Assembly: GCF_001194135.2 (NCBI RefSeq)
Contig: NC_068982.1
Location: 10,069,977-10,133,976, forward strand
Source of the DNA: Octopus bimaculoides
Taxonomy: Eukaryota
Direction of reading: 5' to 3'
Length of the DNA: 64,000 nt
The position numbers were made by a program, and so were the translations under genes. Positions within the stretch are counted from its first letter, which is position 1. Every line of letters begins with the position of its first letter. Of this stretch, positions 4,745-62,535 are shown in pieces. Below the pieces are notes generated by a model, which was not told where the DNA came from, made no database searches, and was given only the letters and a program-made list of their open reading frames with translations.

Positions 4745-4950
4745 CTAGACATAAGCTCACTCTCTCTGTCAAATCAACATTACCTGTACAGGTGCAACTG
4801 GGTGCTACATGTCAGATGTCAAAATGATCACACAGTAACAGGATTCGAAGCACTTTGCTCAAGAACACAACACAATGCCTGGTCTGGGAATTGAACCCAT
4901 GATCTTGCAATTGTGAGTGCATCTCAGTAACCATTAGGCCATGCTCCTTC
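4745..4950 (-). mobile_element. tRNA-headed SINE, family F (same family as 16515-16720)
   Basis: The reverse complement matches 16515-16720: B-box gggttcaattcccagacc, ttcttgagcaaagtgctt, catctgacatgt, cctgtacaggtaatgt. Confidence 0.7.
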
Positions 4951-5554: not shown

Positions 5555-5840
5555 TGCCAGTTACGCCAGACTGGCTCCCATGCAGGTAGCACGTAAAAAA
5601 CACCTTTTGAATGTGGTCGTTGCCAGAACCGCCTGACTGGCCCTCATGCCGGTGACATGTAAAAGCACCCACTTCACTCTTGGAGTGGTTGGTATTAGGA
5701 AGGGCATCCAGCTGTAGAAACTCTGCCAGATCAGATTGGAGCCTGGTGCAGCCTTCTGGCTTGCCAGTCCTCAGTCAAACTGTCCAACCCATGCCAGCAT
5801 GGAAAGTGGACGCTAATCGATGATGATGATGATGATGATT
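5555..5840 (+). mobile_element. RTE LINE 3' UTR fragment ending in (GAT)n
   Basis: tggttggtattaggaagggcatccagctgtagaaac...ccaacccatgccagcatggaaag...gatgatgat. The same 3' end follows RTE ORF2 at 51916-52620. Confidence 0.85.
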
Positions 5841-6867: not shown

Positions 6868-7037
6868 TGTTACATTATTTACATTATTTACATTTGACGG
6901 ATATTTGTCTTCATCTTCTTTGTTGTTAACCACAATGTTTCAGCTGATATATCCTTCAGCCTTCATCAGGTGTCTTGGGGAAATTTCGAACCTGGGTTCT
7001 CATTCCTAAGGTATTTTTCGATTTTATTATTATTATG

Positions 7038-7094
<57 letters not shown>

Positions 7095-7113
7095 ATCACT
7101 GCCTGGAATTGAA
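6868..7113 (-). mobile_element. Family D SINE-like element with hammerhead-like motif (left member of inverted pair 1)
   Basis: Reverse complement: ttcaattccaggcagtgatctg(aat)n...aagacacCTGATGAaggctgaaggatatatcagctGAAAcattgtg...tcaaatgtaaataatgtaaataatgt. Confidence 0.85.
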
Positions 7114-7145
7114 ATATACCTTAGGAATGAGAACCNNNNNNNNNN

Positions 7146-7185
<40 letters not shown>

Positions 7186-7204
7186 ATCACTGCCTGGAAT
7201 TGAA

Positions 7205-7345
7205 ATATACCTTAGGAATGAGAACCCATGTTCGAAATTTCCCCAAAACACCTGATGAAGGCTGGAGGGTATATCAGCCGAAACGTTGTGTTAACAAACA
7301 AAATGAGGACAAATGTCAATCAAATGTAAATAATGTAAATAATGT
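7205..7345 (+). mobile_element. Family D element body (right member of inverted pair 1)
   Basis: ataccttaggaatgagaaccc...cctgatgaaggctggagggtatatcagccgaaacgttgtgtt...aatgtaaataatgt. Inverted relative to 6868-7015. Confidence 0.85.
7247..7292 (+). ncRNA. Minimal type I hammerhead-ribozyme motif (best-preserved copy)
   Basis: AACAC(7247-51) / CTGATGA(7252-58) / extra A / GGCTG-10 nt loop-CAGCC / GAAA(7280-83) / C-GT-T / GTGTT(7288-92). Stem I and stem II are 5 bp perfect; stem III is the palindromic ACGT. Activity untested. Confidence 0.6.
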
Positions 7346-7544
7346 CTTAGATTTGTCCAGGATTTTTCGTTTGTTATTATTCAAACTTGGTTTAAATGTA
7401 GGAAACAGGGTAATAGAGAAAAATAGACGATTACTAAATAATGTAAAAAGGACCCATGTCAGTGCCACATAACAGTGGGACAGAACCCAGTACGATTTGG
7501 CTGGTAAGCTAACTACTTACCGCACAGCCATGCCTGTGCTTATA

Positions 7545-12754: not shown

Positions 12755-13502
12755 AAATTAGGCCTCACCGAGGCAATGACTTGTGACCGAGATCTTTGGA
12801 AATATGCTGTGCATGTGAAGACCCGGCAAGCCAAGTGAGACCAAAATCCAAGGCCTCTGCCAGGGATGTAGCCAGTCCACTTACGCATAACATTCCTTCA
12901 TTGGACACTAAACTCCACTTGCGAAGACCTGTGGAGGCAAGTGAAATTGAAATCGAACTAAATTTGTAGACTGGCACACTTGCCAACGTCTTCATTGAAC
13001 ACTAAACTCGGCTTGCAAAGACCTGTTGGGGAAAGCGAAATCGTGATGGCACATGTACCAGTAGAGCACTAAGAGCACCGTTTGAGCATGATCGTTGCCA
13101 GAGCAGCTGTCTGGATTTTGTGCCAGTGGCATGTAAATAGCACCATTTGAGCGCAATCGTTACGAACATCGCCTTCCTGGCACTTGTGCCAGTGGCACGT
13201 GAAAAGACATTTGAGCGAGATCGTTGCCAGTGTTGCTGGACTGGCTCCTGTGCAGGTAGCACGTAAAATACACCATTTCGAGCATGGCCGCTGCCATTAC
13301 CGCCTGACTGGCCTTTGTGCCGGTGGCACATAAAAGCACCCACTACACTCTCGGAATGGTTGGCGATAGGAAGGGCATCCAGCTGTAGAAACACTACCAA
13401 ATCAGATTGCAGCCTGGTGTAGCCACCTGGTTCCCCAGTCCTCAGTCAAATCGTCCAACCCATGCTAGCATGGAAAGCGGACATTAAACGATGATGATGA
13501 TG
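12755..13502 (+). mobile_element. RTE LINE 3' end: ORF2 C-terminus plus full 3' UTR with five ~65-bp repeat units
   Basis: KLGLTEAMTCDRDLWKYAVHVKTRQAK* followed by the UTR ending ggacattaaacgatgatgatga. Confidence 0.9.
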
Positions 13503-14312: not shown

Positions 14313-15141
14313 TTCTTTTGCTTTTCATTTGATTGTAGCCATGCTGGAGCACTGATTTTAGTCGAACAAATTGGCCCCAGGACTTATTCTTTATAAGCAT
14401 AGTAGTTATTCCATCAGTCGCTTCTGCTGAACCACTAAGTTACAGGATCGTAAACACACCTACATTGATTGTCAAGTGATGGTGGGGGACAAACACAGAC
14501 ACTCAAATATCATCATCATCGTCATCATCGTTTAACGTCCGTTTTCCATGCTAGCATGTGTTGGACAGTTCGACTGGGGTCTAGCAAGCCATGAGGCTGC
14601 ACCAGGCCCCAATCTGTTCTGGCAATGTTTCTACAGCTGGATGCCCTTCCTAACACCAACCAGAGTGTAGTGGGTGCTTTTATGTGCCACTGGCACAAGA
14701 ATCACAGGAGCTGGCATCGACCACGATCGGATGGTGATATTTATGTGCCACCGGCATGGAAGCCAGTGAAATATATACACGGATATCTCATTTTTTTGTC
14801 TCTCCTTTTTTTACTCTCCCTTTTTTTTCTCTCTTTGTTTCTTTCTGTGGAAGAGCATAGGCTCAAAACATTAAAGATTTTTTCAATTCCCGAGCGTTAT
14901 ACTAATACATCTATTTGTTTTCTACACCACCTGTCTTCATCTATTGTTTTTTTTGTGAATTCTCCATATATATATCTACGACAGGCTTCTTTCAGTTTCC
15001 ATCTTCCAAATCTGCTCACAAGGCTTTGGTCGGCCTGAGGCTATAGTAGAAAACACTTACCCAAGTTGTCATGCAATGGAACTGAACCTGGAACCACATG
15101 GTTGGTAAGCAAGCTACTTACCACACAGCCATTCCTGTGCC
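14313..15141 (-). mobile_element. Family A SINE interrupted by an RTE 3' end (14510-14775) and a Penelope-pLTR-like piece (14790-14980)
   Basis: The SINE tail half (14313-14510) and head half (14985-15141) are collinear and flank the two inserts at the central microsatellite. Confidence 0.8.
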
Positions 15142-16514: not shown

Positions 16515-16720
16515 AGTCCCATGGCTTAGGGGTTAGGGTGTTGCGCTCATGATTGAGAGATCATGGGTTCGATTCCCAGACCGGGCATTGTGTTGCGTTG
16601 TGTTCTTGAGCAAAGCACTTCATTTCAAGATGCTCTACAATAATTTCAACATCTGACACGTGGCACCTGTTGCGCCTGTACAGGTAATGTCAATTTGACA
16701 GAGGAAGTCTAATGACTGAA
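16515..16720 (+). mobile_element. Family F tRNA-headed SINE
   Basis: A-box-like tggcttagggg, B box gggttcgattccc, then gttcttgagcaaagcactt. Confidence 0.7.
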
Positions 16721-17640: not shown

Positions 17641-18295
17641 ATTCTTTTCTACTCTAGGCACAAGGCCCGAATTTTTGGGGAGGGGGGAGCCAGTCGATTA
17701 GGTCGACCGCAATTTGCAACTGGTACTTAATTTATTGACCTTGAAAGGATGAAAGGAAAAGTTGACCTCAGTGGAATTTGAACTCAGAACGTAAAGTCAG
17801 ACGAAATACTGCTCAGCATTTTGCCCGGCATGCTAACAATTCTGTCAGCTCACTGCCTTAAAATATTTTTTTCTACTCTAGATACAAGGCCCGAAATTTT
17901 GTAGAGGGGACCAGTAGATTAGATCGACCCCAGTACACAACTGGTGCTTAAGTTATCGACCCTGAAAGGATGAAAGGCAAAGTCGACCTGGGCGGAGTTT
18001 GAACTCAAAACATAAAGACAAACGAAATACCACTAAGCATTTTGCTTGGTGTGCTAACGTTTCTTATTTCTTTATTGCCCACAAGGGGCTAAACATAGGA
18101 GGGACAACCAAGGACAGACAAAGGGATTAAGTCGATTGCATCGACCCCAATGCGTAACTGGTACTTAATTTATCGACATCGATAGGATGAAAGGCAAAGT
18201 CAACCTCGGCAGAATTTGAACTCAGACCGTAGCAGCAGACGAAATACCGCTAAGCATTTCACCCAGCATGCTAACGATTCTGCCAGCTCACCTCT
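17641..18295 (-). mobile_element. Three tandem family B SINEs
   Basis: Copies 17641-17861, 17868-18060 and 18061-18295, each with aaaggatgaaagg(a/c)aaagt...atttgaactc. Confidence 0.9.
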
Positions 18296-21410: not shown

Positions 21411-21434
21411 TACCTTCCTACCCACACATACACA

Positions 21435-22292
21435 CAGTGTGCGATGGGTAAATTGTCGTCATTTTATATTTTTAATTTCGTGAATGCACATTTGTTTGTT
21501 TTTGATTTTGTTGACTACACAGTATAATAGGGTCAGCTGGGTACTGCCTGTGAGAAAGGCAGCACAATGACACAATTCACTCTGCCAGAAATTTGGAAAC
21601 GACATGCTGTACTGCTTGGCATTTGTGCCAGAAGCTCTAATACAAACATTTCAGAGTGTCTGGATGTCAATCAGAGGACATGTACTGAGAGTGATAAAAA
21701 TCAAACATCCAGTCAACATCATGGTGTTTGGAGTGATCACTAGTGATGGCGACGTCATGCCTCCATTCATCTTCCCACATGGCCTCACACTCAACATAGA
21801 GACCTACATCAACTGCCTGGAGGAGGTAGTGCTGCCCTGGGTAAAGAGGATGGCTGTTGGAACACCCTATGTCTGGCAACAGGACTCTGCACCATGCCAC
21901 ACAAGCAGGAGAACCCAGTCATGGCTGTCAGACAATTTCTGCATCCACATCACCCCTAACATCTAGCCACCTAGCTCCCCAGACTGCAAACCCCTTGATT
22001 ATTATGTGTGGGGCGCAGTTAAGCGAGAGACCAACAAAACTCCTTCTAACACCAAAGATGAACTGAAGACAAGGATTATGGCAGCATTCCCCAACTTAAA
22101 TGAGGAGATCGACCAGAAGAGTTGCAGGATATTCCGAAGTCATCTGGAGGCCATGGTTGGAGCCAATGGTGATCTTATTGAATAAATTTACTCTTTAGTA
22201 TTTCAAGATATTTTAATGTAATTTTGGTAAATGTATCTGTTGAAATGAGATGTCAGTGTTATTTTCATTTTTGTGTAATTTAGACAACAATA
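21435..22292 (+). mobile_element. Internally deleted Tc1/mariner-superfamily DD37D (maT-type) transposon
   Basis: ATG 21567 (MTQFTLPEIWKRHAVLLG), then IMVFGVITSDG, YVWQQDSAPCHT and I*PPSSPDCKPLDYYVWG, with 37 residues between the second and third Asp. Stop 22183-85. Left TIR cagtgtgcgatgggtaaattgtcgtc and partial right TIR gacaacaat. Confidence 0.9.
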
Positions 22293-30813: not shown

Positions 30814-31326
30814 AATTGCACATTATTATTTACATTATTTACATTCGACAGATATTTGTCCTTATCTTGTTTGTTGTCAACGCAACATTTTGGCTGATAT
30901 ACCCTCCAGCCTTCATCAGGTGTCTTGGGGAAATTTCAAACCCGGGTTCTCATTCCTAAGGTATTTTTTGATATTATTATTACTATGCCCACGGGCATAT
31001 GGCATAGTGGTTCAGAGCGTGGGCTACTAACCCCAAGATTCCGAGTTCAATTCCAAGCAGTGACCTGAACACTAATAATAATAATAATAACATCGAAAAA
31101 AATACCTTAGGAATGAGAACCCAGGTTTGAAATTTCCCCAAAACACCTGATGAAGGTTGGAAGGTATATCAGCCAAAACGTTGTGTTAACAACAAACAAG
31201 ATGAGGACAAGTATCTGTCAAATGTAAATAATTTACAGTATTCCTCATCTCTTAAATATAGAACAATAATAATAACATCGAAAAATACCTTAGGAATGAG
31301 AACCCGGGTTCAAAATTTCCCCAAGT
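30814..31326. mobile_element. Family D inverted pair 2: minus body 30814-30990, full plus copy 30991-31264 with tRNA head, plus a partial extra copy
   Basis: Junction palindrome TATGCCC-AC-GGGCATA (30984-30999). A box tggcatagtgg, B box gagttcaattcc. The hammerhead-like motif at 31142-31187 has G12 mutated to A. Confidence 0.9.
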
Positions 31327-32158: not shown

Positions 32159-32507
32159 GGCGCAGGAGTGGCTGTGTGGTAAGTAGCTTGCTTCCCAACC
32201 ACATGGTTCTGGGTTAAGTCCCACTGCAAGGCACCTTGGGCAAGTGTCTTCTACTATAGCTTCGGGCCAACCAAAGCCTTGTGAGTGGATTTGGTAGACG
32301 GAAACTGAAAGAAGACACAAAGACACATGTGCACCCCACCTCCACACTCACATATGATGGGCTTCTTTCAGTTTCTGTCTACTAAATCCACTCACAAGTT
32401 TTTGGTTGGCCCGAGGCTATAGTATAAGACACTTGCCCAAGGTGCAATGCAGTGGGAGTGAACCTGAAACTATGTGGCTGGGAAGCTAGCCACTTACCAC
32501 ACAACCA
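32159..32507. mobile_element. Inverted pair of family A 5' halves (32159-32315 +, 32355-32507 -)
   Basis: Both copies end at gaaactgaaagaag and are separated by about 40 bp. Confidence 0.85.
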
Positions 32508-33090: not shown

Positions 33091-33859
33091 ATATTAAAAG
33101 ACCCCATGCTGGTTCCACACAAAACCCACCAGACAAATGATAGAAACGATAAAAGATAAAAGATGAAAGAACACAAAAATAAAACATCGGATTCCGGAAA
33201 AGTTAGTTGAGAAAAAAAAATTGGATGAAAAAAATGATGGTGAATTGATTTACCACAAGGAGTGAAAAATGCAATTCTTCAGACTCTTGAACTCCTTCAG
33301 AGAGGAAAACTCATTCAGGCTAATTGCAACTGGTTTTCAGAGAACTGAATAAGACAAGAAAAAGTGAAAGTGTAATGTTGAGAAATAGATGAGGAGAGAG
33401 AGAGAGAGAGAGAGAGAGAGGCAGGAACGACTATGAGTAGTGAGGTAGAAGTGTGATGTGGGAGGAAGAAAGTGAAGCTGGGGAAATGGTAAAAGGATGC
33501 AGGAAGATAGCAAGAACCAGATCATGTGGATTGAGCAAGCAAAGCAGCAAATGAAAGAATTTCAGTATAAAACAGCCTGAAACATACAAAATCCGAGAAA
33601 GAAGAGAAAGAGAGAAATAATCAATTTTGACAAACAGTGGAAGAAGAAAGACAAAAAACTTTCTTCTAGAAACAGAATTTAGAGAAGATTATTGGATGAT
33701 AACTTGATCCCCCCACCCCCACCTTATTTTCAAATCATTTTAATTTTTAATATCAAGTTCAGTATTTTATTGTGGTATTTTAAAACGACCTCTATATATG
33801 AAATCATTCTGGTAACAATACACTTACCAAAAATCTAGAATCCAAGTTAGATGGAACTT

Positions 33860-34039
33860 ACAGTTCTATATTTAAGAGATGAGGAATTATGTACATTATT
33901 TCCATTTGACGGATATTTGTCCTCATCTTGTTTGTTGTTAATACAACACTTTGGCTGATATACCCTCCAGGCTTCATCAGGTGACTTGGGGAAATTTCGA
34001 ACCTGGGTTCTCATTATTATTATTATTATTCAGGTCACT
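33860..34039 (-). mobile_element. Family D body, single copy
   Basis: gttctatatttaagagatgagg...ggctgatataccctccaggcttcatcagg...ttattcaggtcact. Confidence 0.85.
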
Positions 34040-34418
34040 TTTGCCAAACTGCTAAGTTACGGGGATGTAAACACACTAATATCGGTTGTCAAGCAATGTT
34101 GGGGAGACAAACACAGACACACAAATACATACATACATATATATATATACATGACAGGCTTCTTTCAGTTTCTGTCTACCAAATCTACGCACAAGGCTTT
34201 GGTCGGCCAAAAGCTATAGTAAAAGACACTTACCCAGGGTGGTGCCACGCTGGAGGACTGAACCCGGGATCATGTGGTTGGGAAGCAAGCTACTTACTAC
34301 ACAACCAATCCAGACATTACTGCTATGATACAATGATTTTAAGATAAGTACTTAACACACAAATTAGTTAACAACTGATGTCATTTGTACTTTAAGAAAG
34401 TGGTTATACACCATTAGG

Positions 34419-36907: not shown

Positions 36908-37230
36908 GATCATCATCATCATTGTTGCTTAACGTCCTCTTTCCATGCTAGCATGGGTTGGATGGTTTGACTGAGGGCTGGCAAGCCAGAAGGCTGTACC
37001 AGGCTCTAATCTGATCTGGCAGAATTTCTACAGTTGGATGCCCTTCCAGCCACTCTGAGAGTGTAGTGGGTGCTTTTTACATGCCACCGGCATGAGGGCC
37101 AGTCAGGCAGCACTGGCATCGACCATGCTCGAATGGTGCTTTTTACATGCCACCGGCATGGGACCAGTCAGGCAGCACTGGCATTGACCACACTCAAATG
37201 GTGCTTTTTACATGCCAGTGGCACATAAAT
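36908..37230 (-). mobile_element. RTE LINE 3' UTR with three hairpin repeat units
   Basis: catcatcatc...ttccatgctagcatgggttggat...gtgctttttacatgccac(c)ggc three times. Confidence 0.85.
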
Positions 37231-37287
37231 AATTATTTAATTCTTTGTACAGCTGGTACACAAACTCCAAACTGTATGTTTATTGAT

Positions 37288-37830
37288 CTATATTTTAGAG
37301 ATGAGGAATTCTATACATTATTTACATTGGATGGATATGTGTTCTCATCTTGTTTGTTGTTACAACAATGTTTCGGCTGATTTTCTCTCCAGCCTTCATC
37401 AGGTGTCCTGGCAGAATTTTGAACCCAACTCTGGGTTCTCATTCCTAATAATAAAAATAATAATGATGATTTCAAAAATGTTTGCCACAAAGGCAACTTG
37501 GGGGAGGGGATTAAATCGATTACATCGACCCCAGTGCATAACTGGTACTTATCCCCGAAAGAATGAAAGGCAAAGTCAACCTCAGCAGAATTTGAACACA
37601 GAATGTAGAAGCAGACAAAATACTGCTAAGCATTTCTCCCGGTGTGTTATCAGGTCTACAAGCTCGCCACCATAATAATAATAACATCAGCAAAAAATAC
37701 CTTAGGAATGAGAACCCAGGGTCGGGTCCAAAATCCCACCAGGACAACTGATGAAGGGTGGAGAATAAATCAGCCAAAACATGGTAACAACAAACAAGAT
37801 GAGGACATGTCCATCCAATGTAAATAATGT
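37288..37830. mobile_element. Family D inverted pair 3, with a family B SINE (37475-37672, -) inserted at its centre
   Basis: Minus body 37288-37470 has an intact CTGATGA/GGCTG...CAGCC/GAAA. Plus body 37673-37830. Confidence 0.85.
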
Positions 37831-38028
37831 ATGTGTATTGTTTTTAAAGACACAAAACAGCCTTCATTCAGAAAAGCAGATTACCTCAATCAGCTCTTGC
37901 GTTCTGATGTCCCTCTCTTTCCAACACCTTTCATCATCTCTCGCCTCCTCTCTACCACTTTTGAAATTCATGTGCCAGCAAAGTGCAGTTTGGAGCATTT
38001 CACAAGTTTCTGTAGCATTTTTGTCCAG

Positions 38029-49134: not shown

Positions 49135-50915
49135 CATCATCATCGTTTAACGTCCGCTTTCCATGCTGGCATGGGTTGGACGATTTGACTGAGGACTGGT
49201 GAAACTGGATGGCAACACCAGGCTCCAATCTAATTTGGCAGAGTTTCTACAGCTGGATGCCCTTCCTAACGCCAACCACTCCGAGAGTGTAGTGGGTGCT
49301 TTTACGTGTCACCTGCACGAGGGCCAGTCAGGCGGTACTGGCAATGGCCACGCTCAAAATGGTGTCTTTTATGTGCCACCCGCACAAGAGCCAGTCCAGC
49401 GGCACTGGCAATGATCTCGCTCGAAAATCCTATGAAGGCCAGTCAGGCGGTACTGGCAATGGNNNNNNNNNNNNNNNNNNNNNNNNNNNNNNNNNNNNNN
49501 NNNNNNNNNNNNNNNNNNNNNNNNNNNNNNNNNNNNNNNNNNNNNNNNNNNNNNNNNNNNNNNNNNNNNNNNNNNNNNNNNNNNNNNNNNNNNNNNNNNN
49601 NNNNNNNNNNNNNNNNNNNNNNNNNNNNNNNNNNNNNNNNNNNNNNNNNNNNNNNNNNNNNNNNNNNNNNNNNNNNNNNNNNNNNNNNNNNNNNNNNNNN
49701 NNNNNNNNNNNNNNNNNNNNNNNNNNNNNNNNNNNNNNNNNNNNNNNNNNNNNNNNNNNNNNNNNNNNNNNNNNNNNNNNNNNNNNNNNNNNNNNNNNNN
49801 NNNNNNNNNNNNNNNNNNNNNNNNNNNNNNNNNNNNNNNNNNNNNNNNNNNNNNNNNNNNNNNNNNNNNNNNNNNNNNNNNNNNNNNNNNNNNNNNNNNN
49901 NNNNNNNNNNNNNNNNNNNNNNNNNNNNNNNNNNNNNNNNNNNNNNNNNNNNNNNNNNNNNNNNNNNNNNNNNNNNNNNNNNNNNNNNNNNNNNNNNNNN
50001 NNNNNNNNNNNNNNNNNNNNNNNNNNNNNNNNNNNNNNNNNNNNNNNNNNNNNNNNNNNNNNNNNNNNNNNNNNNNNNNNNNNNNNNNNNNNNNNNNNNN
50101 NNNNNNNNNNNNNNNNNNNNNNNNNNNNNNNNNNNNNNNNNNNNNNNNNNNNNNNNNNNNNNNNNNNNNNNNNNNNNNNNNNNNNNNNNNNNNNNNNNNN
50201 NNNNNNNNNNNNNNNNNCCCTGGAATGAGATAGAAGTTGTTTCCTGTTTGTTTACAGTCTTTATTGCACCTGAACATCTGCCACATACAAAAACTAACTT
50301 CGTAGTTAATCTGCCTTTGATATTGCTGCACTCTTATGTGTCCATAGCTTGCACTGGGTACATCTTATAGAGTTACTACCTACTCCTTTTCTACATACCA
50401 AGCAGGGCCATATACCTGAAGGGCTTTGTGTTTTATCTACCTTCCTACTTATTAGGATTTTGGTTTTTGCTAGGTTGACTCTAAGGCCCTTCGATTCTAG
50501 TCCTTGCTTCCACACCTGAAACTTCTCCTCTAGTTCTGATAGTGACTCTGCAATTAGTGCAAGGTCATCAGCATAGAGGAGCTCCCAGGGACAAACTGTC
50601 TTGAATTCCTCTGTGATCGCCTGGAGGACTATAATAAATAGGAGGGGACTGAGGACGGAACCTTGGTGGACCCCTACCTCTACCTGGAATTCATTACTGT
50701 ACTCATTTCCAACCCTCACCTTACTGGCAGCATCTCTGTACATGGCTCGCACAGCTCTCACTAACCATTCTTCTACCCCAAGTTTCCTCATTGACCACCA
50801 GATAAGGGATCGGGGGACCCTGTCAAAGGCTTTTTCCATGTCAACGAAGGCCAGGTACAGAGGTTTATCCTTGGCTAGGTATTTCTCCTGCAGCTGTCTC
50901 ACTAGAAATATGGCA
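49135..50915 (-). mobile_element. RTE-clade LINE: RT domain, zinc-finger insert, gap, 3' UTR and (GAT)n tail
   Basis: 50306-50902 encodes FVDMEKAFDRV, GVHQGSVLSPLLF, LLYADDL and RVNLAKTK. After a 1-nt frameshift it continues as CSNIKGRL...CGRCSG...SFQG. The 3' UTR at 49135-49462 is on the same strand across a 755-N gap. Confidence 0.92.
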
Positions 50916-51915: not shown

Positions 51916-52620
51916 CATCATCATCATTGTTTAACGTCCGTTTTCCATGCAGGCATGAGTTGGATGACTCAACTGAGGTCTGGGAAGCCAGGAGGCTGCA
52001 CCAGACTCCAGTCTGATCTGACAGCGTTTCTACAGCTGGATGCTCTTCCTAACGCCAACCACTCCGAGAGTGTAGTGGGTGCTTTTTACGTGCTACTAGC
52101 ACAGGGGTCAGAGGAGTCTGGCAATAACCACGATCGGTTGGTGCTTTTTGCATGCCACCGGCACAGAAACCAATCAAGGTGGCGCTGGCATCAGCCATGT
52201 TTCGATGATGCTTTTTACGTGCCACCGGCACAGGGATCACAACTACAATTTCCATTTGATCTTGATTTACTTGACTCAATAGGTCTCCACAAGCACAGCA
52301 GATCGCCCTACGATCTAAGGTATTTTTGAGTGGGCTGGGACTGGTTAAACAACACTGGTGTAGGATAAAACTGTGAACTCACTTTATTTGCCGGGTCTTC
52401 GCAGTCACAACATATCTCCAGAGGTCTCTGTCTTTCGTCATTTCCTCTGTGAGGCCCAACGTTCGAAGGTCATGCTTCACTACCTCATCCCAGGTCTTCC
52501 TGGGTCTACCACTACCCCGGATTCCTTCAACTGTTTGGGAGTGACACTTCTTCACACAGCTCTCCTCATCCATCAGAAGTACATGACCATACCAGTGCAA
52601 ACGTCTCTCTTGTAAATATC
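51916..52620 (-). mobile_element. RTE LINE 3' end: ORF2 C-terminus plus 3' UTR
   Basis: YLQERRLHWYGHVLLMDEESCVKKC...GRPRKTWDEVVKHDLRTLGLTEEMTKDRDLWRYVVTAKTRQIK* (stop 52379), then the UTR with three hairpin units and (GAT)n. Confidence 0.92.
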
Positions 52621-55419: not shown

Positions 55420-56015
55420 ACTGGTTTCAGTTATTTGACTGTGGCCATGCTGGAGCACCGCCTTTAGTCGAACAAATCGACCCCAAGACTTATTCTTTGT
55501 AAGCCTAGTACTTATTCTACCGGTCTGTTTTGCCAAACCGCTAAGTTATAGGGACGTAAAAACACCGACAATGGTTGTCAAGCAAAGGTGGGGGGACAAA
55601 CACAGACACACAAACATACATATATACATATATATATATGTATACGTGATTCATCCCAGGCCTGCCTGACTGGCTCCTGTGCTAGTGGCATGTAAAAAGC
55701 ACCCAGTGGTTGGCATTAGGAAGGGCAACCAGCTGTGGAAACTTTGCCAGATCAGATTGGAGCCTGGTGTAGCTGCTGGCCCTCCAGACCTCAGTCAAAC
55801 CGTCCAACCCATGCCAGCAGGGAAAGCAGACGTTAAACGATGATGATGATGATGTTGAGCTTCTTTCAGTTTCCATCTACCAAATCCGCTCACAAGGCTT
55901 TGGTCAGCCCGAGGCTATAGTAGAAGACACTTGCCCAAGGTGCCACGCAGTGGGACTGAACCCAGAAGCATGTGGTTGGTAATCAAGCTTCTTACCACAC
56001 AGCCACACCTGTGCC
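55420..56015 (-). mobile_element. Family A SINE with an RTE tail (55655-55855, +) inserted at its central microsatellite
   Basis: Collinear SINE halves flank the insert. Confidence 0.85.
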
Positions 56016-56386
56016 TTAGTGCAAAGAAAAAGTAAATACACACACACACACAAAACAAAACTCAGTGTAGACTTTTATTATAATAGTTACCGAAAAAATG
56101 TGTTGCTTACATAGCAAAATTTAAACATCATAGAATTATCTGAAAAGTGCAATTTGAATGAAATTTGAAAAGAACATCTGGATATGTATAAAGGACAAAG
56201 CCTAAGAACTGAAATGCCAAGCAGTGAAGAATATCTGAGGGGGAAAAACTGACACACTAACCAAAAAATGGAGAAAGTATTGGCTGAACAGATGAAAGAC
56301 AGGAGAAAATGTAGATGCAGTGTGACAACATGGTATGTAAAGTTACAAGCAAAGATAAGCTAAATCTAAAAGAGTGACAATAGTTC

Positions 56387-56815
56387 AGTTCTATATTTAA
56401 GAGATGAGGAATTATGTACATTATTTACATTACTTACATTTGACGGATATTTGTCCTCATCTTGTTTGGTGTTAACACAATGTTTCGCCTGATATACCCT
56501 CCAGCATTCATCAAGTGCCTTGGGGAAACTTCGAACCTGAGATCTCATTCCTAAGGTATTTTCCAATGTTATTATTATTGTTATTATTATTCAGGCATAG
56601 TGTTTAAGAGCATAGGATACTAACCCCAAGATTCTGAGTTCGATTCCAGGCAGTGACCTGAATAATAATAATAATAACATCGAAAAATATGTTAGGAATG
56701 AGAACCCAGGTTCAAAATTTCCCCAAGACACCTGATGAAGGCTGGTGGGTATATCAGCCAAAACGTTAACAACAAACAAGATGAGGACAAATATCCGTCA
56801 AATGTAAATAATGTA
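56387..56815. mobile_element. Family D inverted pair 4
   Basis: Minus body 56387-56595 is joined through gg to a plus copy starting catagtgtttaagagc (tRNA head), with B box gagttcgattcc and cctgatgaaggctggtgggtatatcagcc. Confidence 0.9.
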
Positions 56816-57088
56816 GTAACAATAGTTATTTCCAAAATAAAAAAAATTTCTTCAGAATCTGTATTTCTGTTTGTATATATCTTGAATTTTTACAAATTCA
56901 GTCTATTTTAACAAAAACGTATTTTCAATAATATACTCCTAATGAGAAGCTCTTCTACCTAAAATATATTTCTGGGCTTATAAAGCACATTTCTAGCTAA
57001 TAGAACCATGAAAAGTAATGACTGATATTATTTTATTAAAGTAATTTTCAAGTCATTCTGGAAGGAAGACGGTTCATGAATATACATA

Positions 57089-58566: not shown

Positions 58567-59889
58567 ATTAGATTATAAGTGTTATGATGAACAAATGAAA
58601 ATAAAATCCAAATAATTATGTGTTTAAAATTCCTTACAAGGGGAATTCTTTAGTGGAAGAAAAGCTTTCTGTAAATAAAGTATGGAAACCACTCAAAGAG
58701 TTGGTAAGGAAGCAACAACTGAGATGCAGGCAAACTGCAGGATGGTATAAAGAAATTTCAATGGATGAACAAATTGATGTATCTAGGTCCTGTGCTTGTA
58801 CTGAGTAAAAAAAAAAAAAAACACCCATGCTGGCATCACATGAAAAGTGTTTGGTATTAGGAAGGGTATCCATTTGAAGAAACCATACCAAAAGTGACAA
58901 CTGGATCCTGGTGCAGCTCTCCAGTTCCTGTCAAATCATCCAACCCATGCCAGCATGGAAAATGGATGTTAAATGATGATGATGATGAGGAGTACGAGGC
59001 TATTAGGACTCTTGTTAACATGTTGTGATGATAGTGATAACAGAATAGTAGGGGAAAATTTGTTCAGTAATGAAAAAGTTACAGTGCTGGAATCTTTAGT
59101 TGGTCAGAAGAAAAAGGAAGTTGAAATCTCATATTTTTGGAAGCTGAAAAGTGAAAAGTTCAGCAATATATTTGTGAAAAATTGCATGTAATGTAAGACT
59201 AGCCTGACACCAGGGAAAAAGTAAGAACTACAACATAAGAAAATACTAAGGAAAATTCACCATAACTGCTGCCATTTAATAAACTATAGTGGAAATGAAT
59301 TTTGGAAAGGCAAATTTTATAGGTATACACACCCTCTTTATTATAGAGGTTATTTCTTCAGAGGGAAAAGTAAATGTCGAATTATATGAAATGTATTCCA
59401 AGGACTTAGATGCTTTTTCGTAGCAGCTCCTTCCCATAAGTAATAAATAAACACCTTCAAGGCCCACTTTGCACAAGGTTCATGGTTACAGCTGGGAAAT
59501 AATTGAACTAAATGGCAGTTTTTAGGACTCTGGATGACTTGGTGCTAGAAGGTTATCATTAAATCATATAAGCTGTGTGAACCAATCTAACACACAAAAT
59601 CATTGAAAGCACAAACCGTCTTAACACAATCAGTAGATTTTGGGTTCCCTATGATCCTGAAGTTAATGCAGGGAAGAGAAAATGACAGCCTCACTGCAAA
59701 AAATGTTGTATACAAGGACATTCGACCCATTACTACAATTAAAATAAGGTAGAAACCGAAATTCCTGACAACGAAAGCCCTTTCAACATTGAACACCTGT
59801 GTGATTATTACAATGTCATTGTTGACATCAACGTCTTCTTTTTCTGCATGTCTTCGGATGGTATATTCTTTTATTCCTTTATCTGTTTC

Positions 59890-59955
59890 AGGAATGATAA
59901 CCCAAGTTCAAAATTTCCCAAGATGAGGACAAATATCCATCAAATGTAAATAATA
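59890..59955 (+). mobile_element. Family D fragment lacking the hammerhead segment
   Basis: aaaatttccccaaga|tgaggacaaatatcc: deletion between two caaga microhomologies. Confidence 0.7.
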
Positions 59956-61650: not shown

Positions 61651-61940
61651 CATATACTCTCACCCACATCCATAAAATCTTTAAACTAGGAAATATCCAG
61701 ACAGGATTGAAGCAGACAGGGAGTAGAGTGGGCACGTCATTGACAATGCCAGGAATAGCAACGAAAGGAATTTACAAAACACCTAGACAATTGAACAATT
61801 AATCAAACAATCAATTAGTTAATAGGTTAAATGCTAACAAATTGATTAATAAAGAATTGAAATAGAGCCAATGCATGTGTTTGTTATTAGCAAAATGAAC
61901 CTCCTGTTTCAATATCTGTTTCAATATATAAGTTTGTAGA

Positions 61941-62535
61941 AGGCGGCGAGCTGGCAGAAATGTTAACATGCCGGGCAAAATGCTTAGTGGTATTTCGTCT
62001 GTCTTTACGTTCCGAGTTCAAATTCCGCTGTGGTCGACTTTGCCTTTCATCCTTTCAGGTTGATAAATTAGATACCACTTGTGTATTGGAGTCCATCTAA
62101 TCGACTGACCCCCCCCCCCAAACAAAAAATTTAGAGCCTTGTGCCTAGAGTAGAAAAGAATATTTTAAGGCGGTGAGTTGGCAGAAACGTTAACGCGCCA
62201 GGTGAAATGCTTAGCGGTATTTCGTCTTTACATTTCTGAGTTCAAATTCCACCGAAGTCGACGTTACCTTTCATCCTTTCAGGATCGATAGCCTAAGTAC
62301 CAGTCACGTACTGGGTCGATCTAATCGACTGCCCCTCCCCCAAAATTTCAGGCCTTTTCTATTTATAAGGCAGCGAGCTGGCAGAAACGTTAGAGGTGTG
62401 TCTTTACGTTCTGAGTTGAAATCCCGCCGAGGTCAACTTTGCCTTTCGTCCTTTCTGGGTCGATAAATTAAGTACCAGTCGACTGGCCCCCTCCCTCCTC
62501 AAAATTTCAGGCCTTGTGCCTAGAGTAGAAAAGAT
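61941..62535 (+). mobile_element. Three tandem family B SINEs (tail type 2)
   Basis: Copies start with aaggc at about 61941, 62168 and 62368. Confidence 0.9.

Follow-up and report, generated by a model that had tools for sequence, protein, structure and literature searches.

How a short repeat comes to be written into a genome twice at one site, as two copies in opposite orientations with their 5′ ends facing, is the question raised by family D in a 64,000-nt stretch of the Octopus bimaculoides genome (NC_068982.1, positions 10,069,977-10,133,976, assembly GCF_001194135.2), which we refer to as the window. The window is AT-rich and eukaryotic, short interspersed element (SINE)-like repeats are dense throughout it, and its 11 N gaps, several of them beside repeats, point to a short-read scaffold. 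Family D was searched for by BLAST with the plus copy at 30999-31260 as query, and then with an nhmmer profile built from all copies. Both searches return the same six loci and no others, namely four head-to-head inverted pairs (L1-L4) and two single copies (S5 and S6), which bears out the architecture of minus body, junction and plus copy described in a first-pass annotation of this DNA. In our reading, to which we give a rough probability of 0.72, family D is a SINE-like non-autonomous retroelement copied by the reverse transcriptase (RT) and GIY-YIG endonuclease of a Penelope-like element (PLE), with each pair being one insertion.

Inverted pairs and their boundaries

If 10 points were placed at random in 62 kb, at least four close neighbour pairs would be met with P ~0.0014, and the probability that all four D pairs are head-to-head is 0.0039. 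Within the window, 8 of the 10 D copies are members of adjacent inverted pairs compared with 4 of the 58 that belong to four other families (Fisher p = 2.7e-6), an excess in the direction anticipated by the annotation, and none of these four control copies is clearly head-to-head. The FAM1 control pair (32166-32507) differs in structure from the D pairs: it is tail-to-tail, both members keep their 5′ heads and are cut at about position 150, and they lie 38 bp apart. The arms of the D pairs are 86-92% identical to each other (8-14% divergent), the L2 arms having 139 nt at 92% complementarity. Because the arms are only this similar, the pairs are not read-level or assembly palindromes, a possibility that the annotation had itself raised, and the insertions are old.

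According to the alignment of copies, the D unit of ~270 nt consists, in order, of a palindrome, a tRNA-like head, a (TAA)n linker, ~50 nt, a hammerhead motif of 46 nt, another ~50 nt and an optional tail, and its 3′ module of ~125 nt takes in the hammerhead, the ~50 nt after it and, where present, the tail. At L3 and L4, a target site duplication (TSD) encloses the whole pair. The minus arm of L3 (37287-37455) carries a tail (37287-37315) and a decayed hammerhead (37362-37407) and is 5′-truncated at ~q112, and the plus arm (37666-37827) begins in (TAA)n at ~q78 and runs to a short 3′ end, ...TGTAAATAA; the pair is flanked by TGTATGTTTATTG on the left (37273-37285) and TGTATGTGTATTG on the right (37828-37840). 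The minus arm of L4 (56386-56595), with its tail at 56386-56417 and a decayed hammerhead at 56474-56519, is 5′-truncated at ~q66 and includes the CTGAA of the head end, and the plus arm (56594-56814) starts in the head at tRNA position ~10 (q10) and continues through (TAA)n and body to a short 3′ end; here the duplication reads AGTGACAATAGTT (56373-56385) and AGTAACAATAGTT (56815-56827). Both TSDs are 13 bp long with one mismatch each and abut the outer 3′ termini (null for ≥13 nt ~0.003 each), and at both loci the minus arm, at its tailed 3′ end, comes within 1-3 nt of the left TSD. The GG microhomology previously noted at the L4 junction (56594) is seen, and the L1 arms join at a (T)GAA microhomology. 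Also confirmed is the family B (FAM3) SINE between the L3 arms (approximately 37475-37665, plus strand), an unrelated, later insertion nested in the AT-rich junction.

The inner truncation points (minus/plus) are ~q48/q100 in L1, q80/full length in L2, ~q112/q78 in L3 and q66/q10 in L4. These points vary from arm to arm and from locus to locus, and every arm is thus a truncated cDNA of its own. The L3 arms have in common 12 derived states unique to this locus, including a 6-nt insertion, which points to a common source. With flanks, TSDs and inner truncation points differing by locus, and with the exclusive states of L3, the earlier claim that the pairs are separate events stands, and the sequence supports the view that each pair would be the product of one insertion event.

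L2 contains the longest copy. Its minus arm (30825-30983), which has a decayed hammerhead (30879-30924) and a short 3′ end without tail, is 5′-truncated inside (TAA)n at ~q80, and its plus arm (30984-31264) extends from the 16-nt palindrome TATGCCC-AC-GGGCATA (30984-30999) through the tRNA-like head, (TAA)n and a body with a decayed hammerhead (31142-31187) to the tail (31235-31264). This palindrome had been taken for a one-off fold-back at the L2 junction. An O. bimaculoides gene model that derives from another D copy encodes it too, with one CpG transition, at its N-terminus (MPMGIWHSG), and because it is present in that other genomic copy it is inherited sequence of the element's 5′ end. 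Directly adjoining the tail is a partial direct copy (31265-31326, plus strand) made up of (TAA)n and the ~50 nt upstream of the hammerhead, which stops just short of helix I and may have arisen by a template jump or as a partial tandem.

The minus arm of L1 (6871-7113) retains the body, the (TAA)n linker and the final ~24 nt of the head, with 5′ truncation at ~q48 and a decayed hammerhead at 6928-6974, and the plus arm (7203-7345) is 5′-truncated at ~q100; both have the short 3′ end without tail. The "partial head at 7113" reported for this junction is no junction feature. A scaffold gap of 10 N (7136-7145) lies between the arms, and the ~55 nt before it (~7080-7135), consisting of (ATT)n and cagatcactgcctggaattgaaatataccttaggaatgagaacc, recur after it (~7146-7228); this repeat is an unmerged contig overlap inside the inverted repeat.

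The tail is found on exactly one arm in L2, L3 and L4 and on neither arm in L1. Of the single copies, S5 (33861-34039, minus strand) ends with the tail (33861-33892), and S6 (59884-59954, plus strand), which is 5′-truncated, terminates at the short end like both L1 arms. Because each of the two 3′ termini also ends a single copy, both are genuine, alternative ends. The short end is formed by the ~50 nt after the hammerhead and closes with one to three 9-nt units TGTAAATAA (examples of the variation are at 6871-6895, 7318-7345 and 56418-56445), and this copy-number variation could come from slippage when reverse transcription begins. The tail is a further 29-32 nt past the short end, ACATAATTCCTCATCTCTTAAATATAGAAC, and in folding it pairs with the body via a 9-bp stem AGAUGAGGA/UCCUCAUCU (z = -2.25). 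An internal deletion in S6 (from ...AAAATTTCC to CAAGATGAGG...) takes out the hammerhead region, and a possible TSD of ~16-18 nt with indels around this copy is marginal. The 5′ end of S5 is fused to a 3′-truncated FAM1 SINE (34023-34310) at the microhomology GTGAC(C)TGA, and the FAM1 remainder is absent on the other side of S5; the fusion could be a template-switch chimeric retrocopy or an insertion with target deletion.

A predicted hammerhead, the rest of the element and related loci

The sole intact hammerhead in the window lies in the plus arm of L1 (7247-7292, plus strand) and reads AACAC-CUGAUGA-A-GGCUGG-AGGGUAUA-UCAGCC-GAAA-CG-UU|GUGUU, and the majority consensus of family D is GACAC-CUGAUGA-A-GGCUGG-AGGGUAUA-UCAGCC-GAAA-CG-UU|GUGUU. 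A descriptor scan gives this one intact motif in the window versus none in 300 dinucleotide-preserving shuffles, and a relaxed descriptor also gives 0 matches in the shuffles. In both the intact copy and the consensus, the CUGANGA box, the GAAA box and a UH cleavage site stand in type I order. The minimal hammerhead ribozymes (min-HHRs) of metazoan PLEs are marked, according to Cervera & de la Pena (2014), by an extra base between 9 and 10.1, G10.1-C11.1 and a palindromic 15.2-16.2, and they lack helix III and combine a short helix I with a long helix II. The D consensus has an A between 9 and 10.1, G-C at 10.1-11.1, a CG palindrome at 15.2-16.2, a helix II of 6 bp, a helix I of 5 bp and no helix III. 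We regard it as a minimal type I hammerhead of PLE type, a ribozyme predicted from the letters of the consensus, and lacking helix III it would act as a dimer. The other D copies have the two core CpGs decayed to CA or TG.

The ~50 nt between (TAA)n and the hammerhead include the invariant block TTAGGAATGAGAACCC. The head (31000-31054 in the longest copy) contains a perfect A box TGGCATAGTGG (31000) and a near-perfect B box GTTCAATTCC (31045) with 34 nt between them, and combinations of A and B boxes at such spacing occur three times in the window, all within SINE heads. ARAGORN finds no tRNA in the D head, and neither does Rfam, even at E < 10; its only similarity in the profile search is a weak one to the heads of FAM1 SINEs (E ~0.02). 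Another repeat has a tRNA-like head (4887-4941, minus strand, and 16522-16576, plus strand) with the same 55-nt A-to-B layout as D.

Family D also has a reading frame, which starts at an invariant ATG (AGGAATGAGAACCC) and, in ~52 open codons, crosses the hammerhead and reaches the end of the tail. It is seen at 7218-7355, 33856-34014 and 56381-56548 and in other copies, and the 6-nt insertion of L3 is in frame. Translated D peptides match just two named proteins, both from O. bimaculoides: UniProt A0A0L8FV75 is the D open reading frame (ORF), and a "dystrobrevin beta isoform X1" model starts inside a D copy. The open frame resembles the junction between pseudo-long terminal repeat (pLTR) and ORF in PLEs, and it may be a relic of the start of a PLE ORF or annotation noise. 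Protein profile and word searches found no long ORF with the D-frame N-terminus, and a D-frame profile run against 1.84 billion proteins returned only short spurious ORFs and the unrelated low-complexity P0009. Metagenome matches to the invariant 20-mer TACCTTAGGAATGAGAACCC came from two unrelated prokaryote-like contigs and were set aside as chance hits. Read along the element, the D copies have 22 A>G and 5 T>C changes (4.0% versus 1.8% per site), and the idea that this excess is the trace of an edited template was dropped as not significant (p = 0.10).

Related DNA was retrieved from other assemblies by way of the D reading frame. Logan contigs (runs SRR118693xx) carry D-like copies at ~77-83% identity, one of them at ~69%. 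Among these, L004 (6-442) is a head-to-head pair in which both arms keep their heads, and L012 and L015 each hold a single copy; the other contigs are broken off within the head or the (TAA)n linker. The long-read assembly ERZ21867824 contains a related family with more than 1,700 ORF matches, represented here by two loci. In L016, a TSD of ~12-15 bp surrounds the whole insert, whose minus copy is full length with a tRNA-like head and the short end, and whose plus side consists of 2.7 tandem 129-nt units at 98% identity with a tail at the direct end only; it has two intact min-HHRs, CAC-CUGAAGA-A-GGCCGG-AGGACAUA-UCGGCC-GAAA-CG-UU|GUG. Pair 4 of helix II is U-A in octopus D versus C-G in the L016 family, which is one compensatory difference. 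In L017, a perfect 12-bp TSD encloses an inverted copy with the short end, followed by three tandem 129-nt units, and the tail is confined to the direct end; the inverted junction is exactly symmetric about the helix II hairpin. The layout of TSD, inverted copy, direct or tandem copies and tail thus recurs across genomes.

A stretch of ~730 nt in the window outside any D copy (21420-22159) matches L017 (19041-20126) at 72-76% identity; the match is due to a common repeat or to a conserved element, and it hints that the source of ERZ21867824 may be an octopus relative. Two further observations concern other repeats of the window. Family B (FAM3) forms same-orientation clusters of two or three consecutive copies (17644-18291 and 61940-62533). 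FAM2 and FAM4 matches are constantly adjacent in a fixed relative arrangement (5555-5825, 13081-13496, 14523-14767, 36929-37223, 49138-49425, 51922-52230 and 55653-55845), so that they are two halves of one longer repeat.

How a pair would be made

PLE inserts are heavily 5′-truncated and often partial tandems, with an inverted 5′-truncated copy directly upstream, a TSD round the whole insert and, at just one of its ends, a tail of 30-40 bp (31 bp in Adineta); palindromes stand at the 5′ end or the inverted junction, and pLTRs can mobilise unrelated sequence in trans (Craig 2021, PMC8557442; Arkhipova 2013, PMC3846280). In vitro, a PLE protein nicks and extends both DNA strands, and reverse transcription starts at two adjacent internal sites, the spacing of which equals the tail (Frangieh 2024, PMC11167929). 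Family D is like such inserts in having an adjacent inverted 5′-truncated copy, a tail of ~30 nt at one end, a TSD round the composite, a palindrome at the 5′ end (comparable to the pLTR 5′ palindromes of Adineta Penelope), a minimal hammerhead in the repeat and, in its relatives, tandem units. An inverted 5′-truncated copy abuts the 5′ end of the direct copy at 4 of the 6 loci in the window and in L004, L016 and L017; head-to-tail tandems are clear, with 129-nt units, in L016 and L017, and are represented in the window only by the one atypical partial copy of L2. Unlike PLEs, D has no ORF for RT or GIY-YIG between or beside the repeats, and it is a unit of only ~270 nt with a Pol III tRNA-like head and (TAA)n.

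Penelope-type mobilisation, as proposed in the first-pass annotation, is therefore supported by the PLE-type hammerhead consensus, the tail on one arm and the TSD round the composite. Next to the observed architecture, the two classes of 3′ end, the whole-pair TSDs, the hammerhead motif and their recurrence in other genomes, it is from signatures that we infer a PLE enzyme as the partner of D and the following order of steps. The target would be cut on both strands, ~13 bp apart, and reverse transcription would begin at either of two adjacent sites, one giving the short end ...TGTAAATAA(TGT) and the other, ~30 nt further, the tail. The second, inverted copy, independently 5′-truncated, would arise when the other DNA strand primes on a second RNA, or alternatively when the first cDNA folds back on itself, and the two inner ends would be joined at a few bases of microhomology. 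We favour priming on both strands because it predicts 3′ ends that point outward, the use of either start site, independent truncation and a TSD round the whole pair. It fits the two genuine 3′ termini at least as well as the self-priming from a 5′ hairpin or template switch that had been suggested earlier, a suggestion that gains from the symmetric junction of L017 and loses the palindrome cited for it, which is element sequence.

A number of results weigh against copying by a PLE in single insertions. Just one of the window's 9 hammerhead regions is intact. Rfam, the hammerhead models of which expect helix III, reports no hammerhead in the whole window at gathering thresholds or in three sub-regions at E ≤10, and covariation in 11 and in 17 copies does not rise above shuffles. 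Pfam gave no match for ten long ORFs of the window, and hence no PLE RT or GIY-YIG domain, and no ORF for either was found beside the related loci, the RVT_1 ORF of L017 (3162-5243) being L1/RTE-like and not PLE when compared with solved structures. No TSD is detectable at L1 or L2, and L1 has no tail either. The two arms of L004 have strongly divergent helix II segments in their hammerhead regions and, because of this, do not come from one identical template. Finally, the sample consists of one 64-kb window and a few fetched related loci.

The closest competitor keeps the same PLE machinery and produces the second arm by fold-back of the cDNA, at a hairpin or an internal microhomology, or by a template switch, a route proposed by Arkhipova et al. 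2013 (PMC3846280). On this model, a second target-primed start does not occur. We consider it clearly the less probable course for these pairs. The L017 junction, symmetric about the helix II hairpin, is what a snap-back predicts, and fold-back probably happens too; a 16-nt palindrome stands at the 5′ end of the longest D copy, palindromes are reported at Penelope inverted junctions, and the GG and (T)GAA microhomologies are as compatible with internal annealing as with end joining. However, the inner ends are asymmetric at every locus in the window, the palindrome is inherited and recurs in another genomic copy, and the tailless arm stops at the short terminus of S6 and L1, which would be unexpected for a run-off copy of a tailed arm. 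It seems very unlikely to us that the arms are two separate insertions, with D or its enzyme homing, in opposite orientation, to the 5′ boundary of a D copy already in place. Nicking of AT-rich DNA, its own pLTR included, has been reported for the PLE ribonucleoprotein, the L004 arms differ as described, and arm-to-arm identity is no higher than identity between loci; yet such homing would have to be base-precise twice, L3 and L4 show neither a second TSD nor a piece of a resident copy outside, and the exclusive states shared by the L3 arms speak for a common source.

L1 twin priming, as Ostertag and Kazazian are said to have described it in 2001, inverts part of a single RNA without duplicating it. 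Its products resemble D in being head-to-head with 3′ ends outward, a TSD round the whole and microhomology at the inner junction, but both arms of D carry the same ~140-200 nt 3′ module, and the contrast drawn in the annotation, that the D body is duplicated as well as inverted, is correct. This duplication of the whole 3′ module also argues against mobilisation of D by an ordinary APE-type long interspersed element (LINE; RTE, CR1 or L2), with twin-priming-like inversions and a fortuitous or irrelevant hammerhead. Such an origin, very unlikely in our view, would suit the LINE RT ORFs common near the related loci, the short tandem 3′ unit (TGTAAATAA)n, which is like that of many LINE-dependent SINEs, and the fact that no PLE ORF was seen; it leaves aside the one-end tail, the tandem 129-nt units and the min-HHR, which are PLE hallmarks, and the other SINE families of the window, which show no clear head-to-head pairing. 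We find it hardly credible that the pairs are a miniature inverted-repeat transposable element (MITE) or foldback DNA transposon with terminal inverted repeats (TIRs) of ~150-200 bp, an inverted duplication at the DNA level, or an assembly artefact. Long inverted arms and TSDs flanking the unit would be expected of a MITE, and the one hit of the Rfam scans is a sub-threshold match to MIR2606, a MITE-like miRNA hairpin model (58 bits versus a gathering threshold of 139.7), which stems from the inverted repeat itself. Against this, only one arm ends in the tail, which makes the termini asymmetric, both the interior and the length of the arms change with every locus, and the same two 3′ termini also end single copies, while an artefact of assembly is at odds with arms that diverge by 8-14%. 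A TSD of 13 bp is moreover atypical for cut-and-paste superfamilies. In place of the symmetric TIRs and constant interior of a MITE or foldback element, we find outer termini, inner ends and loop content that differ.

Comparable elements and what family D may mean

The closest precedent for a tRNA-headed hammerhead SINE is Sm-alpha of schistosomes. Like D, Sm-alpha and Sj-alpha of Schistosoma combine a tRNA-derived head with a hammerhead body and are dispersed at high copy number (PMC2770079). Their host belongs to a different phylum, and the likeness to D is one of layout; the hammerhead of Sm-alpha is canonical, detected by Rfam and active, whereas that of D is minimal, lacks helix III, is missed by Rfam and is predicted from sequence. 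In S. mansoni, dual min-HHRs are also found ~100-700 bp apart on opposite strands (PMC4209133). The non-LTR retrozymes of metazoans are tandem hammerhead repeats of 150-300 nt and have been proposed to be non-autonomous derivatives of PLEs (PMC7761336, bioRxiv 10.64898/2026.07.22.740005). They share with D the non-coding nature, the type I hammerhead and a presumed dependence on PLEs, and the family in ERZ21867824 has 129-nt tandems at 98% identity. D differs from them in occurring as singles and inverted pairs instead of arrays, the profile search having found no tandem D arrays in the window, and in its Pol III-type head, retrozymes being said to be promoterless. Inverted pLTR copies and PLE-dependent hammerhead repeats are already known phenomena; what is new here is a cephalopod SINE-like member with the full PLE insertion signature in miniature.

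The expectation that each paired locus would give a double-stranded RNA (dsRNA) hairpin if transcribed agrees with folding, which yields -243 and -209 kcal/mol (z = -26 and -20). As a more tentative and rather doubtful extension, coleoids and at least one other organism, that behind ERZ21867824, might carry a Pol III SINE superfamily that parasitises PLEs and, owing to the way PLEs insert, lands by default as perfect inverted duplications of 140-200 bp, and hence a built-in, family-specific source of dsRNA. If this were true, D-type hairpins would feed ADAR editing or small-RNA pathways in a lineage with heavy A-to-I editing.

PLE insertion is poorly understood, and its tandem and inverted structures and tails have been described mostly on long autonomous copies that are hard to assemble. 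With its ~270 nt, family D offers many small, fully readable insertion scars, and these could reveal the rules of the junctions genome-wide, including dual-strand priming versus fold-back, the use of microhomology and the choice of start site. The finding also suggests that part of the large "unclassified SINE" fraction reported in octopus genomes (PMC13282606) depends on PLEs and not on LINEs. A new D insertion would put a long hairpin into any transcript spanning it, which makes the family a candidate of relevance to ADAR editing.

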